Shown: positions 36,201 to 56,630, numbered from the stretch's first letter. The stretch is DNA of 58,902 bases from Klebsormidium nitens (GCA_000708835.1 DF237495.1:1-58902); one strand, 5' to 3'. The notes: generated by a model not told the origin, from the sequence alone. Made by a program: numbers and translations.

Positions 36201-39200
36201 GACAGGGCTCGACAAGAGGTGCATCAACCCTTCAGGCAGATACTTTTAATCTGCCTTGCATCATCCCTTGAAGTACGACGAAAAAAATACGTTCCTCAAC
36301 ACATGCGCCGGTTTGCTACACCTAGTCGACGAGAAGAAAGACACTTCCAAACCCAAAGCAAAGGATGTTGGACAACAATCCAGCCCACCTGTGAACAGCA
36401 CCCTTCGTCGCATTCGCAGCCCCCGCAACAAGTCCTGGTACAACTGCCCGTCTTTGTTCCTGATATTATGCGCCTCGTCGAACAAAGCGACGTCCGGCGC
36501 CTCCAGCAGGTGCCACGTCAGCTGCGCGCGCAGGCGCGCGCTCCCCGCGCTCCGGCTACGGAGCAGCGCGCGCACAGTCTCGTAACTCGCGAGGAGCATT
36601 CCGTCTTTTTTCCCGGCCCACTCCTGGAGAATCTTTACCCGGTGCTTGAGGCTCCTCTCTGTTTCCGTCGTCCCCGGTACGTACCCCGGGCGATCCAAGC
36701 GGTACGTTTTGATTGACACCGGCTTTTGGTCGTCCCACACGTGGAGCACGGAGGCGGGGGCTAGTGTCATAATACGTCGGCGCTGCAGGAGTTGGAGCCA
36801 CCAGTACAATGCCCAGCCCTGTTAAGGATTGTTAGAATCTGTTGGAGTGATTTACGAGACATCAGAGCATTGAAATGAATGGTCAGGCCCCGTTTTGCGT
36901 CGCGCGTTAGCATAAAAAGATGGAAAACAAATCATCTTAACTCTCTACTCCTTAATGTGGTCCTGTTTCAAGCAGAAGAGGTCCCTTAATAAACCAGACC
37001 TAACGAACCCATCGTGTCTGAAACTTTGCATACAACGTGAAGGATCTAATCAAGGGGGACCCTCGTTGAGAAGAAATCGACATGAATCTTCGGACCAAGC
37101 TGATCGCAAAAGTCGAGGTCATGTTTCAACACGGTATTGGTGCTTTCCAATCTGCTCTCGATCACAACGAATAACAAACCTCGGACCCACCAGCTTTGTC
37201 TTCCCACTGCCCATCGCATGCGCCAGGACGCAACCCTTTCCGGCTTCCTCAACCTCCGCTTCCGACACCCCTCCCAAGCATCCCGCTTGGCTTCCCAGTC
37301 CGTCTACCGACCCCGTCAGAGCCCTCATCGCAAATTCAAACCCTTCCACTTGTGACCGGAAGGGTTTCCGCCGGGCGCCGAGCACCGCCCAGAACGCCGC
37401 TTCCGCGGCGGATCCGTGCTCCGCGACCAGCTCCGGCGGAGTCCGCCGTTCCGCCGCCCTCACAGCGGAAGTGTGCGACAGCGGACACTCCGGGATGTCC
37501 TCTAGAGTTACTCTCCTCTTTCTCCCCGGGCGCTTTCTCGACTCGTCCCATCCCCCCGGAGGGGGATCCCTTTCCGCCCACAGCTTCGGTAAGACCTTTC
37601 CCATCCAGTTTCTTTCCCAGCGGTGTGAATACGCCCGTGTGTCCAGGCGTTCATCCACGCACGCCCCGAGGAAGGCCCCGTTCACACCGCAGAAGCGGCC
37701 GTACTCGGGATCGATCTTCACACACGACTCGTCATGAGTGTGCCCTTTAGCAACTCCTTTCTTTTCTCCGTTCCGCTGTCGTTCCGCTTCCGTCACTTCC
37801 GCTTCCTGCCTCCGAAAAGCATCGAAGTCCTCCCAGACGCGCCGCAAGGCAGCATCTCCCGAGCTTTTTGCCTCCTCCGTCCGTTCCGTTCCGTTCGTGC
37901 CCTCCCGTTCCGCTGCGGACTTACTCCGTTCTTCCGGCGGCCGACCATCCTCAGCAGCCGTTCTCTGCGACCTCGCTTCCGTTAGAAACTCGTCGAACAG
38001 CGGACAGTCGCCGAATCCCACCCCGCTCGCGCCCACAAACTCCTTGTCCGCCACCGTCCCTCCGAAGAACACCGCGCTCTGCGCGCGCGCTCCCGCGGCC
38101 GGCTCGCGCGCGCCGCCGCGCATCTCCCCGCTCCGCTCCATCGCTCGTGCCATTCTCCTCCGGGTCTCCACAGCGGCGACACGACAGCTCCTCCTGGGCG
38201 CTGCAAGGTCGCCGGAAAGCCCCCTTTTACTGAAACCGTTTCCGCCGACTGGCCGACCGTTTCTCGTTTGTTCCTTTCTTCGCGCCTCCTCTCTGCTCTT
38301 CTTTCGAAGCTGCGCGGTCGACTCCAGCATCTCGTAGTGGCTTAGAATATCATCAAGCGTCGGTTCTGGAAAATTCGAGTTCCAACAAGGCTTTTGGCCT
38401 TTCGCATCGCTTTTTCGGTTGTCTGCCTCAGGGTTTGGGGGCTTGGGCTGACCGTCGGATGCGATGCCGACGGATTGTGGTCCTGACGCCGAAGCATTCT
38501 CGTCTCCTTCTGAGGCTGTTACCCACTCTCCCTCCGTTTTAGACGTGCTCTCGCCAGCCGCCACGTCATCGCACTTCCGCACTCGCGGCTTCTTCCCGCT
38601 GCCCACCTGACGGCTGACGTCAGACCCCCCTTCCGTGACGTCCGCCTCCTCATCCGCCGGATCCTCTTTCCAGCCTCCAAAATCTTCTCGTATGCTCCAG
38701 AGGCATTCGTACTTCCTGTTCTCTTGAATTTCAACCGGAGTCTCCTCAAGCGCTTTCTCTCCAGCCGTCAGCAAAAGAGGCGTTCGCCCCGGACTCTCCT
38801 CCCAACAGTCAGGCACCTCGAGCGCTGGTCCGCTGTTCCGCCGGAAGCAGCGTCTCTTTCCGCCGGAGCCGCTTGAAACTGTCCCCACCAGCTCGCCGGG
38901 GGGATCCCACGGCTGCCCGCTCGGGCCGTGCGCGCGCCTTTTCCGGCCCCGCCGCCGCGTTTCTTCGTAGCAAGGGTAGCACTCCGTCTTGGGACCGAAC
39001 GCGCTGCCGTACCAGACGGTACAAACCGCCCGGGCACAACGCCAGCAAGGGCCCCCCTGACTTCTCACAATCGCCCACTTACTTTTCGCACCTGACTTTT
39101 TACCGGACGTCTTTGGCTTCCGCGTGCTTATTACCCGGCTGATTTTGCTTTGGTTGGTTTCTGACCGGTCGGATTGCCCCGCTTTTACGTCTCTCGGTTC

Positions 39201-39755
39201 ACGTCTCGTAGGCAAACAGTCGAAACTGATCGCCGAAGCTGACGCTTTCAGGGCCTCTAACTCTTTGTTCCTCTTCTCGGCGGAACGCTCCGCTCTTGAT
39301 GCACTCTCGCCAGGTAAGTCTGAATAGAACGTTTCAGAATTGGTACTCGAAGAGCGCTTCCGCGCCGCCTGCGAAGATTCGGATTCTAGAAGCATTCCTC
39401 CTGCCTCTTCGATGGTCAGCGTCTCGAACCCGCCTTCGCCTCTCCACGCGCAGCTTGGTAATGAGACCGCCGATTTAGCTGCTCTTCCGTTCCTAAAGTG
39501 ACCGGAAGAAGAAAGAGCGGGAACCTCAGACCGGAATCCCTCCCGACTTCTCTCATCCTTACAGAGTGATCCCCCGCTTTCCTTATCGGAAAGAGCAAGT
39601 GGGTAGAACTTGGAGGAACCGGTTCTCATGACGTCAGCGCCGCCCACGTGCCCGTTTGGGATGCCCATGTGGGCTCCCATCAGCTCTCTGTCGTCCAGGA
39701 CTAGAAACGAGTCTCTTTCTCTGGGCGTGATTGAGAAGCGCATGTCGGCTTCCAT
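33245..39755 (-). CDS. CLSY/DRD1: SNF2-family chromatin remodeler of the CLSY/DRD1 type, with an N-terminal GATA-type zinc finger, 6 exons, about 1470 aa
   Basis: Exons 39755-37191, 36818-36389, 35873-35144, 34780-34532, 34087-33946, 33550-33245 (4422 nt, phases consistent; start codon uncertain). Motif I CVLAHAMGSGKT; Ia LAPASVLHVW; II LFDEAHNIRN; III LFTGTPYNN; ERVLVFGE; RFNDPQSRAVVLLATVDTCDEGIELFGATRVVILAPLWNP; VI QLIGRVVRPGQ. The FNDPxSxAxVLL..CxEGI.LxGA segment is typical of CLSY/DRD1 rather than of ATRX or RAD54 (from memory). Confidence 0.8.
38970..39047 (-). other. GATA-type C4 zinc finger coding segment within the SNF2 N-terminal exon
   Basis: CWRC-x18-CYPC (CWRCARAVCTVWYGSAFGPKTECYPC). 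The W and GPKT align with the plant GATA consensus CxxC..TPxWRxGPxGPKTLCNAC. Confidence 0.7.
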
Positions 39756-41680
39756 CGAGAACGCCTTCTGATGCACGTGACCAAATCTTGAAGCCAGTTT
39801 CGTTTTTTAGGAGCCACCTGCAAGGAACGGACCAGACAAGTTTAGTCTCTGATAGACTGCTGTGGTCTTAATCACAGTTCTTTCGAGTCCAAGCAACTTG
39901 AGAACAGATCCGGGCGGCCTGTGGATGAAAAAATCAAACAGTGGACAGCAAAGAGGGTTGTGTTTCGCAAGAGAACTCCATTCTCTCCAGAGCATAAGTT
40001 CGTCTTATCATATAAATAGGTTGAGACAGCCTCAAATGGTTCGAGCACGGAAAAAGCAAAATATGGAAGAATGATCTCTTTCCCTGGGCAAAAGCTGGCT
40101 GTAATTTGACTTCGAGCCGGGATTTTGCCGATCAATTGTAAGTGACGAGAAGCAGCCCACTCAAAAGGGATTGTCTTTAGAGCAAGCTTCCAGATTTTCG
40201 CAGCCTCAACGACCCCACAAAATCGAGCAATCAGAACAACCGTAATGACATCTTGCAGATTCATTATCAACAACTCACAAATTGCAGAAGGTCGACGTTT
40301 GTTTTCTAGGTTAATAGAAGTGGATATTCGCAGATTACTACGACCCGAGTTGAGTTTATCCGTCCGTAAAGGATTAAGTGCCCTCCACAACTGGTGCCCA
40401 CAAACTTCGAGAATCAAAGATTTAATCCGTTGTCTTAAAGTTCTCTGGAATGTTTCCTTCTTACCTGTGAGTTCCTTCAGGCAAGGAGAAACAAGTAGAG
40501 GCAACTCTTGCTGCTGGGCAGAGGCCTTGTCTCGAGAAGCAATCTCCCACCGCAACCCCAGGTGCAACAATGCAACTTGGCAAAGCTGTCCAGACTGTAG
40601 CAATAGAGGTATGTCGAAGCTGATGTTCAGGCTATGCCAGTTGCAAACACGCCCTGGTTTCCACTCTTCTAGTTTCGAAAACAGGGCATGCCTCTGAAGC
40701 AACCAGCTCCCAATCAGCGCACTGCAACTCAAGATAAAATCGCCCACCAGAGAATGGGCTTCAAGTCCCAAAGTTCAATGTACAGCTCAAGCGAAGGCCC
40801 AAAACGTAATGTTAGAAGACTACCTGAGGGGGAATGGCGCTTGGACGCTGTTGACACCTCAGCAGGTATCCTTGAAGTACTGCGATTCTCCTTGTTTTCA
40901 TTCCTGCTTGGAATTCGTCCCGTGCAACTTCGAGGTCCAAATTCTGGGTTACTTCGTGAGTTCCAGCATCTTACGAGGGTTTTAGTTGTCTAATCACATG
41001 CCTGAACGTCAATTGAACAGTCAAACCGTCTGGCCGACTAACCACATTTGCTGATCCAATCGGTCCCTCGAACTCGGTCGCCCTTTCGTCACTTCGTACG
41101 TCACAACACCGTGTCGCGGTCACGTCAAAGTCTGCACTGGGTTTCAAAGTGATTTTCGGAGCGCATGCAGCACAGTGTCTCAAGTCTAGTGCTTTGAAGC
41201 GGGGACCTACAAATTCTTTCAGTCGTATCAGTCCATTATTCAAAGAGTACTGAAGCAAGAAGTGGCTACTGCAGGACCAAGAGTCAACATTCCAAGAGCC
41301 AAAAGTTTTTTGGGAGGCTCCCTCGCAGGTCCCTGTGAGCAGAAGAGCCAAGGCTTTAGAGGATGCATTTGTTTTAGAGCTTACATATCTCTCGCAGGGG
41401 GTCTGTCCGCAGCTGCCCTCAATCTAAGAAGTGGCATCAAGCCTTCTTTTGACAGCAACTTAAGGCCCTTGCGGCGTTCTCATAACTTCATCGGACGAAA
41501 GCAAGCTGGAAGATTGCGGCGACTGGGTAGAAACTGAGTCAGAGCTAGAGAGCGCCTGATCTCTTGTGCTTTGAACACGCCAGAACACGCCAGCACAGAA
41601 AGATTGAAGAGTGATTGAAGTTAGAAAGTCTGAGCTTGTCGCAGTTTGATCTCCACGAAGCGCTCTGTGGATCATTCAGC

Positions 41681-44600
41681 ATGAAGGCACCCAAAGCTCC
41701 ACTTGAAGTGCCGGAGAGTCTCTGTTTCCAGATCTTGGGCCCCGAGGAGATAGTGAGTGCCTCTTCTTCCTTTCGTTCAGAAATGCAGACGAGCCTTTGA
41801 CCTGCTCTTTTGGCTGAAACAGTGGAAGCTGAAAACATGGAAAGAACAGTGTCCCTTAGCTCATCCACTCTGCTGCTCTGCTCAAATCAGACGAAGGTGA
41901 GCGAAAAGTTCCCGTCCACGGAGTGTTTCCGGCGACAATCTGCTTGTTGTCCTGGGCAGTCTGTCGCCCCTCTCCTTTGGCACTTAGCTTTCCGCAGCAA
42001 CTGAGAAGCGGCAAAATGACCAAGTCAGACGCCATAGAACCTTCAGCAATGAGAGAATATTGCATCTTTTGAATCTCCCGTAATGGTCTCGGGTTTGACC
42101 TGACAGGTTTCAGTTTGCCTTTGTTGCTCTGAGGCAAGACATTATACGTGTGGATCTGCTCAACCGAAACAATCTGGAACACCCTCCGGCTCCCTTTAAC
42201 GGACCCTTGATAGCAGGGGGACCGTCATATGTTGCTTTGACGTCAGAAAGGCTGAGTAGTAACTATAAATGCGGGAGGCCTTCTTGAAACTGTGAAACAA
42301 TGCATCAAAAGGAGCTTGCCTCGTAAATTGTCTGCTTAATCCAATTGTGACATTGAAACGGCGGGGAAGATCCTCAATTCCACTTGATCCCCTGCGAGAA
42401 ACATCTTCGACCGTTTCGTAGTCCCATAACCAGGTCGCTAGGATGCGGTAGAGATGGTCGCGTTTCCCTACCAATCTTTCGGCATCGTCACTTTCATCGT
42501 CGATCTTTCTGCAGGAGAAGCACAGCGTCGCTCGGTTCGACGCTAAATCCGAGTTGGAGCCGACGAAGAAGGCCCGCTGCAAGGCCAAGTACGCAAAACT
42601 GGGCGTGCCGTACAATGCAATCGGCAAATGTCCGACGTGCGGGGCTTATGGGAGAAAGTGCCCAGGTGCCGTCCTAAGTGTCCTTGGTTAGCTGCTGGTT
42701 TGTCGAAACCCATCCAATGAAGCGAACCGGCTTTGCTGAAAGTCAACTCTGCTTTGAGCGAAGCTTGCAAGCCAGCTTACGATTCTCTGGATTGCAATCA
42801 GGAATGAACGTAGAATCTACAGCTAGGACCATACACCATTCACCAGATGTTCTTGTCTTAAATTAGAAACTGTTTCAGGGAGTTTTTGCCCATTTTTCTG
42901 TCGCTTTCCTGATCGAGGACTTCCTATGAAGACCACGATCTTCCTCACATCTGAGCTTCGATCCTTGATTCACTGATGCCCATCACATCGTCTAGAAAAT
43001 AGAAACAAAACAACAAGAGTTGCACCGACATGCATGCTGAACCCTTTGGAACCCAAGTCTTATGCTAGTGCTTGACTTTTAAATCAAAGTATGCTGACGT
43101 CGTGGCAGGGCACTTCGGCCACACGGATCTGGCGGGCCCGCTGTTCCGGGGGGAGGAGGAAAACAAGATCATCGCTGACGTCATGCGGCACCTCTGCTTC
43201 GCTTGTGGGCGCCCGTCGAGAATGAAGGTGAGAATGACAGGTGGCAACGCCAGAGAAAGTTCAGGAGCGTTTGGCAAACATTCAGCCGCCTCTCAGAGGG
43301 ACGAAGGGGTTGCAATCAATTCTTTTCTTTCGTCAAGGCCGACATGTGAATGACCTGTCTCCTCAGTTATTTCTTTTACCAAATGAGCTGACGCGGAGCT
43401 CAGCTTACCTGATAAGGTTTGGTGCGTAGACATGCTTGATTCTCAGACGATTCTTAGTTCGTGTCTCTTTTCTTGCACGTCTATCAGATGAGTCTAAAAG
43501 ATCGCCATCGTTTCGCTTCATCTCAATCTGGGCTGCGAGAAGCGGATCTTAGAACCAGACTTCCTCCTCTCATCCTCTGCTACGTCCAAACGACCGGTTT
43601 CTCTGTAAGGAACCCAGAAAAGGAAAGTGCATCAAGCCTAGAACGACAACCTATTCAGAAAGAGTCGACAAATAGAAGTTTCCGTGCTTTCCAATTCCTT
43701 GACTTTCATCGACGCTGATAGCATCAATCTCTTGCAGACGCGACTCGCGAAGATTCAAGATCTGCAAGAGAACAAGTGTTTGAACCCGATGGACAGGCGG
43801 TCCATGACAGAGATTGCGGGGAACATCAGGGGCCCGAGCGTAAGCATGACGTCATCACAGAGTTGTTTGCGATGGATTTGTGCTCATATAGTTTCTTGGG
43901 ACTCTTTTTTGCCACATTTTCCCGATCCGCAAGAACGGTTCTTCACGACCCTGATTGCATAGCTTTGACGCGAGGACTTCTGTACTTCAAGACGGAGCCT
44001 TCTTTGAGCGCAGAGATGGCATCGAGCACGGCCTTGCTTTCTGCTTTTGACATGGAATAAGTTCTTTGCATCTTGCATCGAGCGAGAGTTGAACCCCTTC
44101 AGTACTTGAAGAAAAAACGTGATATCTGAGCCGGTGAGTTCGCTTTCAGACAAGGAACCTTATCTTCAGGAATCCTGGTAGTTCGGCCTACTTTAAAAAT
44201 TCTCTCGATGCGAGCCCTTGCCTTTGGCAAACACCTGTTGGGGAGAGAACTTTATGTCTACGCCGGCGGCGAAATCATTTTAAGGAGTCCTTAACACTAC
44301 AGAATGATGTTCGTTTCCAACCTGTTGCTTTGAACAGCAGCATCTGCCAGGAAGATGACTTGTCTTTGACAGAATGCTTGCGCACAGAGATGGATCCTTC
44401 TGCCTTTTGTATCCTTCACATTTATCTTTTCTGATGTTCGTTTTCGAACCTTATGACAGGTGTCGGCCACGCATCCCGTGCTGGCCCAAGCAGGCGGCTT
44501 GGTCCTCAAGGGCGCGACACGTGGCATCCTCCTACGCAATTGGAGCCAGATCCTGTGCGAAAGCTGCGGCGCAAGCTTCAAGAAATTGGCCACGACTCAC

Positions 44601-47600
44601 CCCGAGATGGCTATCCCCAGAGGCTTCAGCGCGCTCGCGGTGAGCATAGCGTATGACAAGTCCAAGAAAGCTTATGGGCTTCTCGAATCAATCTGGCTCT
44701 AGGTACGCTTTGCCTGTGAATATTGTTTCAGGGCGCTCTGGAGTTGCAAGAAAGCTTATAGTGAAACTCGACAGGGATGCAAACCGGCTTTCCTTGTTCC
44801 AACTCTCTTCTGAAGGTAGAACGGCTGCGAAGTGACGTAGGATAAATCATGAGACGAACTTCACACGCTCTCACATTTGAGCGCCGGCAAACTTCGCTGA
44901 TGAACTGGCTCTCACCCTTTGTATGATATTCTTTCCCTCCGGATGATTGAAGAAGTTATCTGGACAAGATGATGAAAGGTCAGCAACTCTCGGTCCGCAT
45001 TTTGGAGCTTTCATCACCAGGTTTTAGGCCGTTTGTTCTTCCTCCACAAGTCGTTGTCGGTGTTTTAGAACTTTTCTCCGCTATTCACGGCGCCTCCTTC
45101 CGTCCTGACGCCAAAGCTCTCAGAAACCCCTGAGACTTCAATCCTCCACTCTCTTTTCAAAGCGTGGAATTTTACCTGCTTTCTGTGCGTATATGCTTAC
45201 ATAACCAATCCATTCTTTCTCATGACGTAGATCCTGGACGCCCTCAAAAGAATCTCGGATGACGACTGGGCGCGGTGTCCGCTGCGGAATTCCGGCCGGA
45301 TCTCCGTCGCCCGGCCGGAATGGCTGCTCCTGACCAAGCTCCCCATTCCCCCCCCACATCTATGCCTGACCATCGCCCCCCTGAAAAAGTTGGTGGCAAA
45401 GAATCGGTGTCTCAAGCGCGAGCACGCGGCCGCGATGCGGCGGGACCCGGACCGCGCGCTCAAGCTGCTCGCGCACAGACTCCCGAGCGAGCTCCAGCCG
45501 CTGGCCAACGAGCACTTTGGGACCAAGGGCACGGTGAGTGCTGACGTCATGGTGAGGTCACTTAGGTCCTCGTCAATCACAAAGAACGTGGTTGTTTGGA
45601 AAGCTGCGCGCAAGCCTCTGCTTTCAACAGAAGCTGTCGTAGTACCTTTTGGGGCAAGCCATGGATTCTGAAGAATGATGTCGACGCGAACGATCGGGCG
45701 CTGCGCGCGGTGTGGACACTTCAGGAGCCCACTTATAAAATCAATCAGATTCGGTTTCCAGTCGTGTCAGATCATCATTCTTCCAAAAAACGCAGAGTTC
45801 AGGCTCCTAAAGCTCTACCATTTACAAATACGACTCGTAAGAACATGCACCGGACCAGATTTGGACTTGAGAAAATGTCTTTTTGAAAGGTATGCACTTT
45901 GCAAGCTGATTGCTTCACCGCACGATAGAATCCTGCAGAAAAGGGCTTTTGCTGAAACTTGGGGCCACGACGTTGTTCAAATCACTTTCTCTCTGTGCGT
46001 GTTGCAGCTTGCCCAACCAGCTGGGAGCCGCCTGATCGGCCGCCTTCAGCCGCACCAGGCTAAGAAAGGCCGGATCCGCTGCACAGTGGCCGGAAAACGT
46101 GTTAATCACGCCGGAACGAGCGTCATCTCGCCGGATCCGTCACTGCCCATCGGAGTGATTGGAGTTCCGGTGGAGATAGCGGAAACGCTTTCCGGATCAC
46201 CGACCTGAACATCGACTACTGGCAGGAGCAAGTGAACGCCCTGGTTGGGCGTTCCGATGGGACAGGCGAGGAGCGGACGCCGGAGCGGAAAGCGGATGCG
46301 GAGCGGAATGAGGGGTCAGGCTGGGTACCGAGACCGGATGGGGAAGAGGGACCGGGGTGGGGAAGTGGATCAAACTGGGACGAGAACAAGGAACAGGAAA
46401 CGGAACCAGAGCCGGAGCGGAAACCGGAACATGAGCGGAAGGAAAAGTCGGCTGAGAGAAAACCGGCAATCAAGCGCAGGTTCTTCAGAAAGGGGAAGCC
46501 GCTGATGTTGGTTCCGGGGGCGACCCTGAAAGTGGGAGATACGCTGGAGCGGTCGCTGCGAAATGGCGACCGGGTGGTGATCAATCGCTACCCGTCGCTG
46601 CATAAGGGCAGCGGGTTCTCGGTTACGGTTCGGGTTTCCGAAACCAAAACCTTCGCCCTCCACCCGGCGATGTGTAGGGGCATGGGAGCGGACTTCGACG
46701 GCGACACAATCGGTTGGTTTCCTTTTTTATCCGATTCTAGTTCGTCTTTCCCCTTTGTCTTTTGTCTTTGCGCCCCGCCTTCGGAAAGGAGACACTCCAA
46801 TACCACCCCTCTATCAGCAACTTTTCTGAATATTCTTTTTCACGTGGACCCGTTGTTTCTTGGGTTTTCCACTAATGTGTAAGCAGCTTTGCGCTCGAAG
46901 TAATAAATTAAAAGGTCAGTTTCTCATGAAACTCCTGCTAGAACGGTTTGATTGAGGGTTCGTAGCGGTACAGCGTCTTATACAGGGAGGTCTGTGTCGT
47001 GTTTCTGGAGTCAACTGTATACCTTGTGCACACCTTGCTCCCATTGGATGAAACCTTGGTTTCAAAAATTGATAGGCCGACTTTGGATTACGAATCTCTC
47101 TTGAAGTTTCTCGGAAATGGTACATCATTTCGTTTTCGTTTCTATGAGTTTTTGATCTTGCGTTGAAGGTACCGAAACTGAACGGTATTGTCTTTTGTTT
47201 TATCCAGTCATCCACGTGCCGCAAGCTCCAGAGCCGAGCGCCGACGTGCAAAGCCTGCTCCCGATCGAGGAGAATCTCGTTTCTCCCTCGGGGGGTGAAG
47301 CCATGGTTACTTTCTTGCAAGACTCCCTCCTAGCCCTCTCCGAGATGGTTAGCACGCTGACCACCTTTTTCACCCAGGAAGAAGCGCAAAATCACTTCGC
47401 GAACGTGCTCCTCGCGTCAGGGTCAGAGGACGGGTTAACGCTAAACCACTTCCCGGAACCGGCAATATGGAAGCACCCCGGGTCGGAGGTTCTAGCGGGC
47501 GGAAAGCGGGTTAAAAACCCGGTTTGGACCGGCCCGCAGCTGGTCGCGGCGCTGCTTCCGGACGGTTTCGAGTACGAAAGCCCGGGTGATGGGTTAGCAT

Positions 47601-50600
47601 TGATCGGGGGAGAGTTCGTGGAGATTGACCGGGAGGGGCAGCTTATGGTCTCAGTTGGCAGACCGGTCAGGGGAAGCGCGTGGCTGCAACCGGGGCCCCG
47701 GGGACTCGTCGCGGCGCTCGATCAGATGTGAGACGACTCCTCCTTTGCGTTTTTATTCATCCATTCTTCTTCGTGTTCATCAGAGTGAAGAAATCAGCTC
47801 TTAGAACGTCGCACAAGGATAAACCTATAGATGCTCACGCTTGCAGAACCCTTATGCCCCGGGTGCGTCACGAGAAGACGACGTAGACCGCACCTCTTTT
47901 TGGTGATTCCGCGTTCTGATACGCCACGGGAAGAACGTGTTACCATATTCTTGGAGTATGTCTTCTCATCGATCGTGCTCGGTAACTGTACTCGATTCCT
48001 AGCCAGTGTATTGCCTTTGACCTCTAAAGATGATAATCCTTAATCCCCGTCAAAAGAGTTTGCATAAAGAAGTGCCGCAGAAACGAAGGAGAAAGAAGCA
48101 TCGCATCAATGTAGAGACTTCCAATCTCCTTGCAGGTCAAAGGAAAACGCATTCACTCCTACAACCGGCCCCGTCTGCGGGCCGCGCGGCGCGGCCGCGG
48201 CCCTCGACGCGCTCCTCGCGCTCGCGCACAGCGTCATGGACGAGCGCGGCTTCAGCGTGGGCCTCGCTGACGTCACCTTCGCAGACGCCCTGAAAGCTGA
48301 CGTCAGGTGGGAGCTCTTTGAGGCCTTCCAGCGGGAGACGCGCGGCGCGGCCGCGAGGGCGATGGCGGTGCGGCCCAAGCAGGTTTTGGGGGCTTTTGGG
48401 AAGGGGCGGTCGCGGGAGGACGAGAATTGCGCGCCCGGACTGATGCTTGCGAGTCAGAGCAGCGCCAAAGCAGTGCAGACAATCTTCAAGGTAAAGTCTA
48501 CTTTTTGGGTTGGAAGGTGACGTTGCAGTTGCTTGGAAAGAAATCTAATTTCGTCAGCCGCTGACGCGGGAGATAATTAAGCTGAGTGACAGACCTTTGC
48601 GCACATCCGCTATGCTTTCCATACGAAGCACGGCTCTTACATTTCGTGCTTGCCCCGTGTGGAAGTATTGTGTAACACCCTCAGATAATGCCATTCTCTA
48701 ATTACCACCGTTCCCTGATTTCCTTACGCCTACACTATATGCTACTGCGAAGAACCCCAAAATCGGCTTCACGCATCAAAGAACCTGGTGATATCGACCT
48801 CTCCCATCCTACTAAAGCGCAACCTAAGCGTTCACCCGAATTCTCAGCTCCACTCGTCAGCTTTCACGACTCACAAATCACAGTGGGGAAACTACTGTTT
48901 TGTGACTCACAAATCAATGCTACCGGAACAACCTTCACTCACCGACCAATCACCGCTCCTCTGCCACGACTATTCCTTCAAGCTGGCCCATCTGCTTCTT
49001 GGTTCTACCTTTCAAATGCGTTCAGTCTTGACCTGGAAGTCGCCTTAAATGAATCCGCCTCTCAGAAAGTGTGCCGTCAGCAATACCTCAACTCCGCAGA
49101 TAAAACCTAAACAAAATCTCATGTCACTATCCAACCGCCGCTTTTTTGCCAGGACTATTCCTCAAGACTCGCCCGCCTTCTGCTCCCCGTTCTACCGCCG
49201 ACAAACGCGTTCAAGCGCATGCTGGACGCCGGATCGAAGGGGTCCCCCTCCGACCTGGTGCAGCTGTGCCTGGCGGTGGGCCTGCAGGGGCACCTGGGCT
49301 CGGGCGCATTCCCACTCGCGGTCAGACAGGAGCTGTACGGGGCCCACTTCTTTTCCGAAGACGAGTGAGAATGCGCTCACGACGGCTACTCTGATTCATT
49401 CTGGCTCCTGACTTCCAGAGTTTCTCCTTCCGGGTTACTATTGCCATCCGTGCTTTCGATGCTTTCGATGGCTGAAGTACAACTGTACCTGCGTTTGAGC
49501 TCTAGTTCACGTCTTCTTCTGGTAGATCTTCAGGTGACCCAGCGGAACTTACAGGCTGTCACGAGAGACCTGTCAACGTCGTTTGTCTTCTTGGATACCT
49601 AAGAAAGCGGTGGATCGACGCCCTTTCAATCGAATGCATCCGACGCTGGAATTGGAAAAGCCAAACCGAATCCGTTCAGTTAGGCAGATACTCGGCGGAC
49701 CATACAAACTCAGACGGCGCCAATCTCAAGGTCCAGCAGATGATGGCACTTCTCGTTCCTGCAATGCCACTGATTCGCCGTTTGATCCTCTTCCAGGTTC
49801 GGCTCGCGCCTCTCTGCTGACGACGCGGCCGCGCGCGACGCCAAAGCGCGCAACTGCTCCCTCGACCAGTATCGCGAGGCCGCGGAGCCGCGCGCGCGTC
49901 TGCAACTCCTGTACGCCCAAGCAAACTTAGGGCTCGTCCCCGTCGGCTTTGGCGGGGCCGTGCTCGCGCGAGCGCGCGAGCAAGAGCCCATGAGCGACGC
50001 GCTGCGCGCGTGCGGGTTTTGGTGCACCGCGCAGGCGGGCCGGGACAGGAACATCGCACACCACCTGCTGACCGCTCTTCCCCATGGAATTGTGAGTTCT
50101 GGGTTCCTCGCTTTTCTGATTGCGTTCTATAAGTGCCGAGCCTTACGATTCTTCATTGAATCTGACATGGCCGAAGTTGTGAACGTCGATTTATAGTACT
50201 TTTGTAAAGTGTGTCCCTTCATTTGCTTCTTCAACGCACCTTCAACGGTGCGCAGCTCTGAATATACCAATGCACCTCATGAGTGCTTGATAGTTTCTGC
50301 TGTCTTCTTCGGACAATTTATGAGCTACGGAACTTGAAAGTTCGCATCCCACATGGAAGCAGCATCGACTTCATCGAACACGTCAGTAGTGCTGTGGGTT
50401 CGGTCACCTCATTTGCTGCCCCGACCTGGAAACTTTATAATAGTCGCTTTCGAATCCTTACAAATCTGTTGGACCACGTAGATCCCACTGCATCGCTGTC
50501 TTTTTATTGAATTGCTCCAGATGGCCTCCGAAAAAGAAGCAGGTTTTGCGAGAATCCGGAATTTTAAGTTCCCCGTTTGTCTTTCGGTTTGAATTCAGCA

Positions 50601-53600
50601 TTCCGAGTCCTCTGCTATCCTCCTTATCAGGGCTCCGGTTTGAGAGCCCAAATGGCTGACGTCAAGCTGGCGTATGACGGCACGTGCCGCGACCTCTCGG
50701 GCACGATCCTCTACTTCAACAAAGAAGCGGAGGGGCCGAACGACGTCGACGCGACACGTGGCGCCCTGCAATTGGACCCAGAAGAGAGCGCGGGAAGCCT
50801 GGCGTCATACGCGCTCAGCGAGCCAATGTCGCAGCAGGCGTTGAAGTCGAAGCACCCGGGGCAATACGCCGGGGAAACACTGGACGCGCTCGAGGTGAGC
50901 TAAAGCTTTATCGCCGGGGAAACAGTGGACAAGTTCGAGATCTCCATAACCAAAACTCATAAATCCCGGCGGCGGGCTAAAGCCGGAAGCACTTGGATTT
51001 TGCCAAGGAAATAGGCTTACCAGATGGAGACTCTGTGAAGGCATCTCTTCGGATTCAAGGCCGATTTTAATCAACTGGAAGGATGTTCTGAACCCCGGAA
51101 GATTCTGAAGCTGAACGCTTCAGGTCATGATGACGTAGATCTTTCAATGGTATTATTCTTGTAGCACGGTAGCGTTTTGATGGAATCTTGACTGCTGTTT
51201 TGAGGTTGTGTTCAGTTGATTCTTCAGTCACCACGTGGCTTCAGCGCGCGCTCAAGGCTTTAAGGAACCCTCACCGCCGTCAAACAATCAAAGATGTGAG
51301 AGTATGATCCGACGAAGATCCCCGCTTACCGGCCTCGTGGTTGCCCAAACCTTGACAAAATTTACGGACGCCCAATGTGAAATTCAAACCCTTCAGCACC
51401 CATTCGCTGAAAGCGCGCCCTCCTTCTTTCTCAACAGCTGGCTCTGCAACTGAAGACACCGGGCTCCAAGTTCTGCCACGTCATCCTGCCGTTTGTACCC
51501 GAGGTGAAGACGGGAGAAGAAGGGGCAGCGACGCCAGAGATAACGTCAGCCCGTGAAATCACGTCCCGAGATCCCGCCACCAGGAAGTGTCACGCGCTCA
51601 TGGACAAGATCCGGCACGTGACGCTGAAAGACATCGCAGCGGCATGGGAGATCAGGTGAGCGGAATTACAGCAAATTCAGATGTTTCAATGAATCTCTTA
51701 AGCTGGAACTAGTGTGGAGACCACTATCTCTAGGATCTTTGAGAGGACCGTCTGAGGAAGCAGCGGTGGCGTGATCCATGCCTTTCTGAAAGAGGTCAGA
51801 TTTCGACGCCTTCATGCACGCACCGGTTGATTGAACCTAAAATGTAGTGATACATGGAGGCCTACTGAACGTTTGCTTGGTAAGTCAGGTCCCGTAGCAT
51901 GGTGTAAGTACCGAGCGAAGCGCGCTCTCAGTTACTCAAAACCAGTCAAATCTCGACTCGACGGAGAATCAGACACGTGTCACTGTTTGTTTCTTGCAGG
52001 TACGATCCCAAGACGGCGCAGCGTGCCTACGACCAGCGCTCCAACTTCATCCTTTCCATCGAGCTGACGAAGCAGGTAAGAAGACTAATCTATTTTCCCG
52101 CATTCGGCGTTGCTGGCTTAGCTCTCATATCTGCTCGAGCCGTCATCTTGTCAGTGGAGTTTACTATGACTAAACTTTCGCCAGATTATGTGACGGCAGA
52201 ACTTCGGTGCAACGAGTGCGCGGCTGGCGATCAACTCCCATCAAAAAGGATCATCTAGAGTACGTCCACTTCCCTGGAAAACGAGCCCAAAGTCATCCAT
52301 AACTTTGAGGCAGCGCAAACAAGCAAGTGAAAGCACATGAAAGCACCCTTCTCACGGCAAAGATGTTGTGCTAAATCACGCTTTGGAAACCCAGTCCCGC
52401 ATGTTACCTACTTTCGTGGTGCGTAATTCACTAAAGAATGAGCAACCCTTTTCACAGGCCATCTTCGACCACCATCTCTTCGACGCCGTGCGCACTCTGG
52501 ACCTGCCACGTGTCCTGGGCGACGCGCAGCCGGGCTTCCGCGCGCGCGTGTGGACTGAGGTCACGTGCCATAAACCCGAGGGCGGTGCCGAGTGCCCCGC
52601 GTGCGCGCAGATGGCGGCGGACCTGGCGGCCGAAGCGCGCCTGGCCGCGCGCGCAGAAAAGTGGGTTCATATTCGCATATAAGATTTCTATTCCCTGAAA
52701 GCTGACGCAGAGAGTATCGACTTCTCAATACATGCTGGAGTTTTGATCATTGCTAAAACAATGGTGGCCTTGTTGTCGTCCAAGCTACTCCTGCACTCTA
52801 AGAAAGTTGTTGTCGAAATCGACAAAGGCAATATTGCCCCTGAGCATCTGAGGATTGTAATCTAGGCCATCAGATTCAAGCGGGCTGTCAAACATCAGGA
52901 TGCCTTTCTGTTCTTTTTATAGCTTGCAGCGATGTTTAATGCTCTCAAAACATTAGAAACCAACCACGAAAGCTCTCAACATCTGCCCAACCGGGTCTGG
53001 ATGTCGAAAATGTCTCAAGATCTTGCCATTGGCTTCCCAACTTTTGTAGCCTACTTCCCTGATCTTGAGCCGTCCGATGCCTTCCTTTTCGTCGATCGAA
53101 CGGTTCACGATCAGGAACCATGAGGGGAGCTTTCGGACGCAACGGCAGGTTTGATGCAAAGAGCTGTAAGCTCCATCAAACTCAGCCTCTTTGCAGCTCC
53201 TCCGTTGACGGCAGCGGTTACGAAGAGGACCCGCCCTCCGTTTTCGACAGTACGGCTCGCAAGCTGCGGGGGATGAGCCGGCAGGCTCTGCGAGAATATG
53301 CGGCGGTACGAGGGACCCCTGAAGTCATCAGTGGTTCTTGCAGCAGCGCGTCTCTGATTACAAGGATCATCGATTGCTGCAAGTGAGCTTCTTCAGTCTG
53401 GTATGCTGTGCGTGCCTCTGTTTTTCCATCCCGTAGCGCGGCGCTTCTGACAGTGGTCTGATTGTTTCGTTTCCCGAAACAGAAAACTTTTGGTGATTGG
53501 TTGCGGGCAAAGTAAAGAGAAATCTAGAATGATTGTCACCAGATATTTTTGTTCAATTGACGTTCTTCATGTGAAGTTTCTTTCTGAACCAAGTGAATTC

Positions 53601-56600
53601 ACCAGCTTTGAATGCCACAGTCAATCAAGCACAGACGTGCAAGGCTCTTTAAGCTTCTCGACTTGCAAAAGCCCTGGCTGACCGATGGCGAGACGTCACA
53701 ACTTCGCCAATGAGACACAACATCAATTTCTCTCAAAAACCAGCTAATCTATGTTAGATGAAGTCAGATCCGTCTCTCGTCGCCAGCTTCAAGTACAGCG
53801 AAGATCCTTGACCTTTCTTCAAACCCCGATCAATTTTATTACGCCCACAAACGCCTCGAGATATTTGCTTCGACAGGATCCATTCGGAGGCGTTCTTCAT
53901 CGAAAACCATCAAGTGCACCTTTTAGCGGTGCTGGCAGACCACGAGATAGACCTGAGAGCCCCCAAGAAGTTTCCGGGGATCGCGGCGGGGGACGAGGCG
54001 GGCGTGCTGATGGGAGCGCAGAACGCGCGCATTCGCGAGGCGGAGGATTTCCTGCGGACCACGCTCAAAGGTGAGTGGAACAGCTTTAAATCGTTGTTCG
54101 ATCCAATCTGGTAAATGAGATGTTTTCAGATGGTGAGAACACAGGTAAGGCCCCTGCAGTAAGAGTAAGAATCCCTCTTTGTGGGTGTGTGTTAATTTTG
54201 GGATGGTCGGGAACCTCTGAATTTCGGTTGGGGTCGGTAGGAGAAACAGAGGTTGAGATACTATTTACATGGTTTTCAAGGATCGGTTAGGGCCAAACAG
54301 GGCTGACTAGCAAGGACTATTTTTTTTTCCCCACCTCTGGTACAGATGCAGCAGCTTAAGGGAGGTAGATTTAAAGACTCGAATGATAAAATAGACTAGA
54401 GTAGAAGCCTTGCTACTCCTCCTGATCCGCTCGGTACCATTCGGGAAGATCATCATGTCTCACCAAAAGCTCTCTCCTGAGGAAGACCATGTCAGAAGTC
54501 TCTGAGAATTCAAGGACGTCGGATCGAATGCATCAAATTCTGTGAATTTGCGAGGCAGTGTGTTGACTTAGTGGCACGAATCCACTTGCAACAAAGACGC
54601 GCTTCGTTCAGATCCGTTACACGGGCGATCTAAAAGATCCGACTCGTTTTTGTCCTTCACAATTTGCCAAGCTTACAAAGTCAGGTTTTGACTGCCACAT
54701 GGATTCTTGCCAACCTTTTCCGCCGTTTCCTCTTGCAGGTGATCCGATGGTTACGGACCTCAAGCCCACCTTCACCGAATACAACCTCCTCTTTCCCCGG
54801 CCCACTCCGGTAGAACCTTCCCCGGTCACTGCCTCCTCAGCCGAACCACCGCTCAGCACACCGGGGCGGTTAATCGGGGAGGTCACGCTGGAGGTGACGT
54901 TACGGCGCCCGACGGGCAAAGCGTTAAAAAGGTGGAAACCGGTGGCGCACGCGGCCGCGGCCGCGGGGGGTTTGGTCGACGCGGTTGACTGGAACCGGGC
55001 GGTCTTGAAGCACCCGGGGGATGTGGAGAAAGTATATGGGCTGGGAACGGCGGAAGCTATGGTCAAAAAGGTCGGGAATCTTTGGTCTTTAAATCTTTTT
55101 GTTATGTTTGTCTTCTACGGTTGTCTGAATACAGCTCTTCTTTCCAGAGTGCTGTAATGAGTCCGTTCAAAACTGCCACTCAGTCTCGATATGCACCAGA
55201 TGCTTCTACAAATACGTATGAGACTTACGCAGAGGACTGATAAAGGTTGACGACCGCAACGGTTTGAAATCGTATTCGAGCAGATTCGTTTCGAAAACGA
55301 ACATCCGCCAGACTTTCTCATTCAGCACCAAAATTTCAAACGAGGTTTCATCCTGCAAAATTTTCCACTCTAGTTTGATCAGCCCATCGAGTGCTGAATA
55401 ATCCACAGGACTATCCTATAAGCCTACGGTTCACAAATGAACCATAAAGATATGCCCAGCCTTCAGACGCGTGCGTAAGTTCATTAATCTCTGACCATTA
55501 CAGACGCCCTTCCCAGGACTTCGGTTGCAGCAAAAATAAAAACGACGATACACAAAAGATAGCAGCACCAAGACTCGTCGAGAATCTTATCCCAAACCTT
55601 TCCCAAGCTCGGCCGTCTCTTCATCATTTTCGCTTCGCTTCATTTGCTCCTCTTCTCCTTTGCAGACCGTGACGTCGCTTTACGCCGAGGCAAAGGCCCC
55701 CGTCTACGAGCAGCACATCAATCTGGTTGCGGCGTGTATGGCCAAATCTGGGAAGCTCCGTCCGTTCACGTCCGCCGCGCTGAACCAGTCGCTCGGCGCC
55801 GCGAGGCGGCGGACGGAAAAGCACCGCGCGGAAACCGCGCCCATGCGACGCGCGCACTACGGGGTGAGTGCTGACCTCCAGAGAGCAAACATAGACTTTC
55901 ATACGACGAAATTTGAGGGTCTAAACAAGGGGCACTTCGGTTCTGTGGAGCTTTCTATCCTGCTTGTATTTCGCTGGCGAGGTCTTGAGAACGCTTTCTT
56001 TGGCGAAGATGTGAAAACGCAATAGGAGATTTTGAATGCTGATAAGAATGAGCGTATGACGGGTCAGAGAATTCATTTGCGTTTACAGGGGTATTGCCTG
56101 ACAAGATCCTGCCCACTCCAAGCTTCACAGCCTTCTTGTAGGATTGGAAGCGATCCTCGGACTTCCATTTCTGATTGCAATGGTCTTCGAAACTGTCACG
56201 AGCATTGGCTTAGCCGTGACGTCGGGTCGTGGGACTCGTATTTGAGCGTCAGTCCTCATAAGCAGAGTCCGAAACGAACTTTCTCCTTCTGGACAACGAC
56301 AGCCGTCATACATACAGTCAGAGCTCAATCAGCCACTAAATCTGCCGTCACCTGCGTTTGCAGGGTGCCTTCTCGACTTTCCAGCAGGCCGCGCTCCGCG
56401 GCGGCACGGAAACGCTCGCGAGCGCGGTCAGCCTGAGCGCGTTCGGGCGGAACGTTCCGCTGGGCACCGGCGGAAAGTTCGACCTTTTGCTCGATTTGAC
56501 TCGATTCCCCCCGGCGACTGTGATTCCTGAGAGAACCTGGCTATGTGTAGAAATGCCGGATGCGTTTAGGGAAACGGAAGCAGCTAGGGCCTCCGGAGAG

Positions 56601-56630
56601 GAGAAGAGGTCGGAAATCAACGAAGTTTAG
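41681..56630 (+). CDS. NRPD1/NRPE1: Pol IV/V-like (NRPD1/NRPE1-type) DNA-directed RNA polymerase largest subunit, about 20 exons; contains a -1 frameshift at about 46190 (possible pseudogene or assembly error)
   Basis: Exons 41681-41752, 42515-42665, 43109-43227, 43738-43839, 44460-44639, 45231-45533, 46008-46712, 47208-47727, 48136-48490, 49153-49364, 49797-50091, 50631-50894, 51438-51655, 52000-52075, 52458-52660, 53197-53305, ~53930-54070 (acceptor and phase unresolved), 54739-55070, 55666-55863, 56364-56630. Motifs: FQILGPEEI; CPTC..CPGHFGH; LCFAC; ARPEWLLLTKLPIPPP; GKRVNH..VISPDP; INRYPSLH; GADFDGD; QDSLL; WTGPQL; AGSKG..LVQLCLAVGLQ; YDGTCR followed closely by AGSLASYALSEP (Pol IV/V-type deletion); KGDP; VDWNR..VYGL; GTGGKFDL. 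No YSPTSPS heptads. Confidence 0.85.
50868..50939 (+). repeat. Short tandem echo of the 3' end of polymerase exon 12 inside the following intron
   Basis: GCCGGGGAAACACTGGACGCGCTCGAG|GT (ending 50894) versus GCCGGGGAAACAGTGGACAAGTTCGAG (about 50913-50939). Confidence 0.75.

Follow-up and report, generated by a model that had tools for sequence, protein, structure and literature searches.

Among the closest described relatives of the gene reported here are the largest subunits of the plant RNA polymerases (Pol) IV and V, NRPD1 and NRPE1. Reviews describe the trigger loop as lost in both (PMC7714444). In Arabidopsis, NRPD1 has S898 at the position of the Pol II trigger-loop His (PMC11343019) and NRPE1 has lost the equivalents of F1084/H1085 (PMC10229537); Pol V's bridge helix is straight and undeleted, and that of Pol IV has a two-residue deletion (PMC10229537, PMC11343019). 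An RPB1-derived largest subunit has also been reported in charophyte algae including Klebsormidium nitens (Chakraborty, Trujillo, Kendall and Mosher 2024, Genome Biol Evol; PMC11194755), and a Pol IV/V-type family in these algae is thus already published. Here we analyzed a 58,902-nucleotide stretch of K. nitens DNA (GCA_000708835.1 DF237495.1:1-58902; hereafter the window), which holds an 18-exon gene of the Rpb1 family on its plus strand (Table 1). The locus is probably the largest-subunit gene of an algal Pol IV/V-type RNA polymerase that split from RPB1 before the separation of land-plant NRPD1 and NRPE1. New relative to the published work are the finding that trigger-loop residues are kept in algae and bryophytes alike, the loop's shorter tip, the tail-less architecture of the protein, a frameshift and a possible second paralogue.

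Like the charophyte NRPD1/NRPE1 precursor (PMC11194755), the window gene encodes the DFDGD motif, a foot deletion of about 190 residues and a diverged bridge helix, lacks a C[KR]YC box, and appears to branch before the NRPD1/NRPE1 split, with a CLSY/DRD1-type remodeler in the same genomes. It differs in its trigger loop, which is called "not conserved" in that work whereas the Q, L and H equivalents are in register in the window gene, and in ending about 45 residues after the polymerase core. The charophyte gene is described there as single-copy and the K. nitens accession is absent from the text of the paper; it may be another gene, and the one in the window may be a second, undescribed Pol IV/V paralogue in the alga.

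Compared with the land-plant proteins, the algal subunit shares with NRPE1 (Marchantia MpNRPE1a; Arabidopsis 8hyj, 8hil) the foot deletion, a bridge helix of Pol II length, GLQ, DWxR and GTGxxF, and with MpNRPE1a also the trigger-loop Q, L and H (QPAYQVMLEANH in MpNRPE1a). Unlike NRPE1, it has neither an AGO-hook C-terminal domain (CTD) nor a DeCL domain, its loop is 5 residues shorter and its domain 1 and GKRV blocks are RPB1-like; the His, kept in the alga, is lost in Arabidopsis and Cryptomeria NRPE1. With NRPD1 (Arabidopsis 7eu0, MpNRPD1, Physcomitrium) it has in common the foot deletion, the absence of heptads and a similar size, and with moss and liverwort NRPD1 the trigger-loop L and H (in moss also the Q), whereas NRPD1 has the two-residue bridge-helix deletion and DeCL, and the His position is taken by S or N in seed-plant NRPD1. 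RPB1/NRPB1 shares with the algal gene the RPEW..PIPPP and GKRV..SPDP blocks, the length of the bridge helix and the E-P-x-x-Q-x-x-L-x-x-x-H register; the gene differs from it in having no foot, no heptad CTD, a loop tip 8 residues shorter, no equivalent of N479 and only about 25% identity.

As no annotated full-length protein for the gene was present in two protein collections, the gene model was built by hand, with exons delimited by conservation between the window and an orthologous locus, L001. Stop-free segments over 41.6-56.6 kb match Pfam RNA_pol_Rpb1 domains 1, 2, 3, 4 and 5 in order, and every intron of the model is bounded by GT..AG. For exons 4-18 the splice sites are the same in L001, where each exon either has the same length or is longer or shorter by a multiple of three. 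The model comes to about 1,558 codons, discounting a 10-bp gap in exon 6 that is considered below. Against the Protein Data Bank (PDB), the active-site piece matches largest subunits, with Arabidopsis NRPD1 at the top (42.7 bits) and RPC1 close behind. One spliced RNA contig confirms two introns, spanning the junction 51655|52000 and matching with a loose end from 52458 onward; RNA contigs are otherwise patchy over 51511-54655, and 49101-51500 is without coverage. An earlier reading made from the sequence alone (the sequence-only reading) had delimited 45231-50894, which is real but covers the middle part of the gene, leaving DWNR, VYG and GTGGKF outside. The motifs quoted in it were recovered by translation at or near the positions it gave, except KGDP, which occurs in no coding frame (nearest KGSPSD).

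In the algal protein the foot of about 190 residues is replaced by a linker of 24 residues between YDGTCRDLSGTILYF and AGSLASYALSEP, encoded within a single exon, which bears out the earlier estimate of about 25 residues where Pol II has about 200. By MAFFT alignment, 73 residues separate the bridge helix from the trigger-loop base; the corresponding distance is 245-278 residues for nine RPB1 and, for land-plant NRPD1/NRPE1, 58-93. Across the splice 50091|50631, ..TALPHGI runs on into GSGLRAQMADVKLAYDG.., and the bridge-helix region, counted from the FF(x)H position up to VR(N/D), measures 47 residues, equal to RPB1. The Pol II length of this helix noted by the sequence-only reading therefore holds, but it is the NRPE1 state as well, being found also in NRPE1 of Marchantia, Riccia, Diphasiastrum and Cryptomeria; only NRPD1, with 45 residues, has the two-residue deletion.

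The other class characters divide in the same two directions. The foot deletion, GLQ for GQQ, DWxR for DATR, one additional residue in GTGxxF and the absence of heptads are Pol IV/V-like. The blocks LKRISDDD..RPEW..PIPPP and KKGRIRC..GKRV..SPDP are Pol II-like, land-plant Pol IV/V having PEA..PPNC and GKRS..GDP. The C[KR]YC box has no match in the gene model; among control proteins, MpNRPD1 and Humulus NRPD1 match it and Physcomitrium and Selaginella NRPD1 do not. Following GTGGKFDLLLD, the stop codon comes about 45 residues on in the window and about 58 in L001, where a different stop is used, and the nucleotide conservation between the two ends at the C-terminal stop. Heptad-like YSPTSPS repeats number 0 in the predicted protein, which has no CTD, no Rpb1 domain 6 and no AGO-hook tail, its just 3 GW/WG all lying in a dock insert in exon 6. 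The RPB1-like blocks and the other Pol II-like characters are likely shared ancestral states. The mosaic of Pol II and Pol IV/V features proposed earlier stands in that characters of both are present; rather than a singular intermediate, it likely represents a Pol IV/V-type subunit that branched off early and carries derived alongside ancestral characters.

Phylogenetic analysis points in the same direction. A profile of exon 7 from three species, run against 1.84 billion representatives, gave 51 hits, the best named full-length ones being a DeCL-bearing liverwort protein, Riccia, Selaginella NRPD1 and Humulus NRPD1. A word search that started from this liverwort protein brought in MpNRPD1, MpNRPE1a/b, Physcomitrium NRPD1, Cryptomeria NRPD1 and NRPE1, and many RPB1. 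In a maximum-likelihood tree (44 rows, 1240 columns) under the site-heterogeneous model LG+C20+F+G4, the window gene and L001 join land-plant NRPD1+NRPE1 with 100/99 support, and land-plant Pol IV/V are monophyletic with the same support (100/99). When the more distant homologue L005 is added, it joins the algal branch (99), and the placement is unchanged after the long branch is thus broken; P0021, a very long RPB1-like branch, is not drawn to the Pol IV/V clade. Approximately unbiased (AU) tests on a 21-row set, for groups named after the tree was seen, reject a grouping of the algal genes with RPB1 (likelihood difference 94 under LG+G4, p 2.6e-6; 75 under C20) and of land-plant Pol IV/V with RPB1 (likelihood difference 94, p 6.8e-6). 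The gene is therefore placed with NRPD1+NRPE1 and not as the unrelated, degenerate RPB1 copy that the sequence-only reading had named as an alternative, and it is likely sister to NRPD1+NRPE1, branching before the two split.

The trigger-loop motif, EPMSQQALKSKH, aligns without gaps to Pol II E1074-H1085 in the pattern E-P-x-x-Q-x-x-L-x-x-x-H. The equivalents of Pol II Q1078, L1081 and H1085 are kept, as had been read from the sequence, and phmmer, MAFFT and a hidden Markov model concur on this. With phmmer, LDPEESAGSLASYALSEPMSQQALKSKH matches the loops of both S. pombe RPA1 and S. cerevisiae RPA190 ungapped, and its His falls on H1206, the invariant Pol I trigger-loop histidine (PMC11343019). 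This is not the placement outside the loop against which the sequence-only reading had cautioned. MAFFT alignment of 46 largest subunits places the algal His in the H1085 column, the numbering of Z. rouxii RPB1 over this stretch being identical to that of S. cerevisiae. The model, built from 16 RPB1 and RPC1-type trigger loops, aligns the exon ungapped, His on His (E 3e-5). Carried over to angiosperm NRPD1 (SEAAYSALDQPIS), the register gives the published Arabidopsis NRPD1 positions E887, L893 and S898 (PMC11343019) and is thereby validated.

The loop is Pol II-like in this register but not in its length. From the His to the KTP motif there are 26 residues in Pol II and 18 in the algal protein, and the missing eight map to Pol II 1086-1093, directly after the His. 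The loops of land-plant Pol IV/V are 3 residues shorter than that of Pol II and the algal loop another 5 shorter. Set beside a competent trigger loop of the Pol I/II/III type, the algal sequence has Q, L and H in register, a K in place of N and a tip 8 residues shorter.

Retention of the His extends to land plants. Liverwort NRPD1-type proteins of 5 species (..K[LM]xxxH) keep L or M, and H; Physcomitrium NRPD1 (EPAYQLKLDSPH) and the NRPE1-type proteins MpNRPE1a and Riccia (QPAYQVMLEA[NT]H) keep Q, L and H; and Diphasiastrum (lycophyte) paralogue a keeps L and H. The His is lost in MpNRPE1b, Diphasiastrum b and Cryptomeria NRPE1, which have Q in its column, in Selaginella NRPD1 (P) and in seed-plant NRPD1 (S, N, R or Q). 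The land-plant proteins compared include P0084, P0092, P0088, P0022 and P0086. It is likely that His retention is ancestral and not peculiar to the alga, as liverwort and moss NRPD1, Marchantia NRPE1a and the lycophyte paralogue keep the residue. Given that the gene is likely sister to NRPD1+NRPE1, the foot deletion would predate the loss of the trigger-loop Gln, Leu and His that contact the incoming nucleotide, which were likely lost later, within land plants, more than once and separately in the NRPD1 and NRPE1 lines. The order of events proposed by the sequence-only reading is thus supported by the tree placement and the bryophyte His and is more general than was proposed; its account of trigger-loop loss in Arabidopsis NRPD1 and NRPE1 also matches published work (PMC11343019, PMC10229537). 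No paper stating that Pol IV/V of bryophytes or lycophytes retain the trigger-loop His was found in the searchable literature, a targeted search included.

Reviews tie the loss of the trigger loop to slow, error-prone transcription by Pol IV and weak activity of Pol V; the order of events found here differs. Whether the first silencing polymerases were catalytically Pol II-like, with the enzymology of Arabidopsis Pol IV/V a late specialization, is testable in Marchantia and Physcomitrium through the predictions made for rate, fidelity, backtracking and alpha-amanitin sensitivity.

Two 93%-identical open reading frames (ORFs) in other assemblies, found in a word search with the trigger-loop exon, led to the loci L001 (18.4 kb) and L002; L003 is a third, more distant orthologue. 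Between the window and L001 the identity is 81% and the ratio of nonsynonymous to synonymous substitution rates (dN/dS) is 0.24 over 1432 aligned codons, without internal stops. Of all the exons, the one with the trigger loop shows the lowest dN/dS, 0.12, at 92% identity to L001, and its substitutions fall in the 24-residue linker, not in the loop. The trigger-loop motif, which is no chance match, is identical in L001 and has a single M>V change in L002, in which the bridge-helix end is the same. The gene is under purifying selection in this lineage.

As assembled, the copy in the window cannot make a full-length protein. Relative to L001 and L003, the latter being intact there, it lacks 10 bp in exon 6; the gene is unbroken in the orthologues of related algae. 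At the break the L001 frame reads AETLSVPVRITD.., matching the conserved GVP..IA..L..P segment of largest subunits, while the window frame continues with AETLSGSPT to a stop upstream of the metal A site. The coding sequence of the model from exon 4 on is 4322 nt (remainder 2) and is in frame only once the 10 bases are counted, so the gap is a single defect. The deletion may be a very recent real loss in the strain or an assembly error. The chances are about equal that the gene is a recently dead pseudogene in this strain, with a real deletion and no full-length product, and functional in sister species. Ten bases missing against two orthologues, with a stop 13 bases downstream, would fit such a loss, as would the very low expression, and the single splice that restores the frame (46155 to 46226) uses weak sites and would drop 24 conserved codons. 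However, the gap is the sole defect of this kind across some 1,550 codons, transcription and, at a low level, splicing persist according to the RNA contigs, any decay must be very recent with dN/dS at 0.24, and an error of assembly may lie behind the gap.

If the locus is the algal Pol IV/V-type gene that we favor, then in species with an intact copy it would join a second subunit and subunits shared with Pol II in an active polymerase, forming the catalytic center of a specialized non-coding RNA polymerase of the RNA-directed DNA methylation type. Its minimal trigger loop would present the Leu to the base and the His to the phosphates of the incoming nucleoside triphosphate (NTP). The shortened loop may position the NTP via the His, in which case the enzyme would resemble Pol II more closely than Arabidopsis Pol IV or V do. 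The lost N479 equivalent and truncated tip would argue for relaxed substrate handling, as in Pol IV/V. The chances that the His serves in catalysis are about even.

It is possible, though we consider it doubtful, that the motif is a structural helix only, that the loop cannot close on the NTP, and that the enzyme is slow like Arabidopsis Pol IV/V and works without catalytic help from its trigger loop, with the His a relic or in another role. The short loop of Arabidopsis Pol V makes no contacts with the NTP phosphates (PMC10229537), and the algal loop has lost 8 tip residues, leaving Pro-Gly directly after the His, and is 5 residues shorter than those of land-plant Pol IV/V. Moreover, the equivalents of N1082 and F1084 are both K, the equivalent of N479 in the metal A motif is G in the window and A in L001, and the bridge helix has diverged strongly. 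Weighing on the other side, the exon encoding the loop is the most constrained of the gene (dN/dS 0.12), Q, L and H are in exact Pol II register in three species, and the 35%-identical L005 (SEPLAQGVLNAVH) keeps Q, L, N and H with a short tip. Other RNA polymerases also accommodate large changes at the loop tip, the SI3 insertion of bacteria being one.

Several observations weigh against the assignment of the locus to an active Pol IV/V-type polymerase. DeCL, a hallmark of NRPD1/NRPE1, is absent: no Pfam match to this domain (DUF3223) was found in the ORFs downstream of the gene (2.3 kb in the window, 4.4 kb in L001), nor did tblastn with three land-plant C-terminal/DeCL queries give anything significant in the window, L001 or L005, while the land-plant proteins P0022 and P0030, used as controls, do match DUF3223. 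The branch of the gene is very long (about 2.3 changes per site) with a deviating amino-acid composition, and attraction to the equally fast Pol IV/V clade may still play some part in its placement. The bridge-helix ORF alone has no significant polymerase match in the PDB. As overall identity is about 25% to RPB1 and Pol IV/V alike and the top scores of single exons are often to archaeal or Pol III chains, membership in the clade rests on the phylogeny and the rare characters. To these are added the loss of the N479 equivalent together with the truncated tip, the frameshift of the window copy, known from the assembly, and the few low-depth RNA contigs, none of which covers the bridge-helix or trigger-loop exons.

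That the gene is an independently degenerated RPB1 duplicate, which lost its foot by convergence and is attracted to Pol IV/V by its long branch, is very improbable: the branch length and composition, the equal identity to both classes, the missing DeCL domain and the lower score of exon 6 with NRPD1 than with archaeal, Pol III and Pol II chains are outweighed by the 100/99 support under a site-heterogeneous model, the same placement with L005 breaking the branch, the AU tests (likelihood differences 75-94), the failure of P0021, another very long RPB1-like row, to be drawn in, and four rare shared characters (a foot deleted at the same place, GLQ, DWxR, and the added residue of GTGxxF) that point the same way.

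A further reading, which we regard as rather unlikely, is that Klebsormidium-type algae carry two largest subunits of the Pol IV/V clade, a giant Pol V-like one with an AGO hook and the compact, tail-less one described here, whose catalytic trigger-loop arm is near-intact and which lies head-to-head with a CLSY/DRD1-like SNF2 gene. If true, a division of labor like that of Pol IV and Pol V would have arisen in algae, independent of or before the NRPD1/NRPE1 split, contradicting the published single-copy picture.

Table 1. Positions of the largest-subunit gene, its exons and its motifs, counted from the first letter of the window.
Feature	Position	Strand	Basis or remark
Whole gene, 18-exon Rpb1-family largest-subunit gene	41681..56630	+	Pfam Rpb1 domains 1-5 in exon ORFs
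Exon 1, start codon, MKAPKAP..FQILGPEEI	41681..41752	+	GTGAGT donor; outside L001 coverage
Exon 2, zinc motif CPTCG..CPG	42515..42665	+	splice to exon 3 rebuilds CPG|HFGH
Exon 3, HFGHTDL..	43109..43227	+	
Exon 4	44460..44639	+	splice sites and frame kept in L001
Exon 5, RPB1-like domain 1 block with LKRISDDD and ARPEWLLLTKLPIPPP	45231..45533	+	Pfam, motif location
LKRISDDD	45243-45266	+	located by translation
ARPEWLLLTKLPIPPP	45309-45356	+	located by translation
Exon 6, GKRV..SPDP block, dock insert with 3 GW/WG, metal A site GADFDGD	46008..46712	+	
Break: 10 bp missing directly after 46193, stop at 46206-46208	46193..46208	+	DNA alignment versus L001 and L003
GADFDGD, metal A site	46685-46705	+	located by translation
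Exon 7, Rpb1 domain 3	47208..47727	+	exon profile matches land-plant NRPD1-type proteins
Exon 8	48136..48490	+	splice sites and frame kept in L001
Exon 9, domain 4, GSKGS..LAVGLQ with Pol IV/V-like GLQ	49153..49364	+	
LVQLCLAVGLQ	49255-49287	+	located by translation
Exon 10, bridge helix (core 50020-50091), length as in Pol II and NRPE1	49797..50091	+	
AQAGRDRNIAHHLLTALPHGI	50029-50091	+	located by translation
Exon 11, bridge-helix end, 24-residue linker replacing the foot, trigger-loop N-terminal arm (EPMSQQALKSKH)	50631..50894	+	
YDGTCRDLSGTILYF	50673-50717	+	located by translation
AGSLASYALSEP	50790-50825	+	located by translation
Trigger-loop motif EPMSQQALKSKH	50820-50855	+	located by translation
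Exon 12, second trigger helix and KTP motif	51438..51655	+	RNA contig joint 51655|52000
Exon 13	52000..52075	+	spliced RNA contig at both sides
Exon 14	52458..52660	+	RNA contig loose end matches from 52458; splice sites and frame kept in L001
Candidate extra in-frame exon, 62 codons, unproven	53197..53382	+	open frame, AG and GTGAG in window and L001
Exon 15	53877..54070	+	splice sites and frame kept in L001
Exon 16, VDWNR..VYGLGTAEA, Pol IV/V-like DWxR	54739..55070	+	
DWNR; VYG; GTGGKF	54987; 55032; 56463		outside the span 45231-50894
Exon 17	55666..55863	+	splice sites and frame kept in L001
Exon 18, GTGGKFDLLLD, ~45 residues, stop codon 56628-56630, no CTD	56364..56630	+	

The candidate extra exon includes ..KLRGMSRQALREYAAVRG.. 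and ..LITRIIDCCK and has no Pfam match; the RNA contigs that cover it (52882-53427) are unspliced. The dock insert of exon 6 (46268-46456) is of low complexity, acidic and basic; it is present in L001, likewise with 3 GW/WG, absent in L003, and larger in L005, with 4 GW/WG. The L005 homologue (L005:4588-20573, on a contig of JGI metagenome 3300060285) is eukaryotic and of Pol IV/V type, and has large disordered inserts in the dock, between domains 3 and 4, and in place of the foot, where about 105 residues are found.

Another protein with a short trigger loop, P0021 (1738 aa, from a Logan 6.7 kb contig), is RPB1-like and keeps the foot (Rpb1 domain 6); its bridge helix is strongly diverged, its loop keeps Q, L and H (SEPVTQKTLSNKH), and its branch is very long. 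Exon 6 was rejected as a probe for relatives, having its best scores against archaeal and Pol III subunits; a word search with it yielded for the most part fragments of Pol I/III, together with an archaeal operon, L004. P0028 (3,763 aa) was considered as a giant paralogue and rejected, its aligned bridge-helix and trigger-loop region looking like a coiled coil.

Downstream of the orthologue, L001:16748-18388 holds an open-ended ORF of 547 codons with a weak GATA zinc-finger match. This ORF has no counterpart in the 2.3 kb downstream of the gene in the window, and synteny therefore ends at the polymerase stop codon. Upstream, a gene on the minus strand (33245-41400) lies head-to-head with the polymerase gene, and no match to this neighbor was found in L005. 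It includes a long N-terminal ORF of 885 codons (37119-39776) without a Pfam match and a piece of SNF2-related domain at 36261-36809, and would fit a remodeler of the CLSY/DRD1 type that has its promoter region in common with the polymerase gene.

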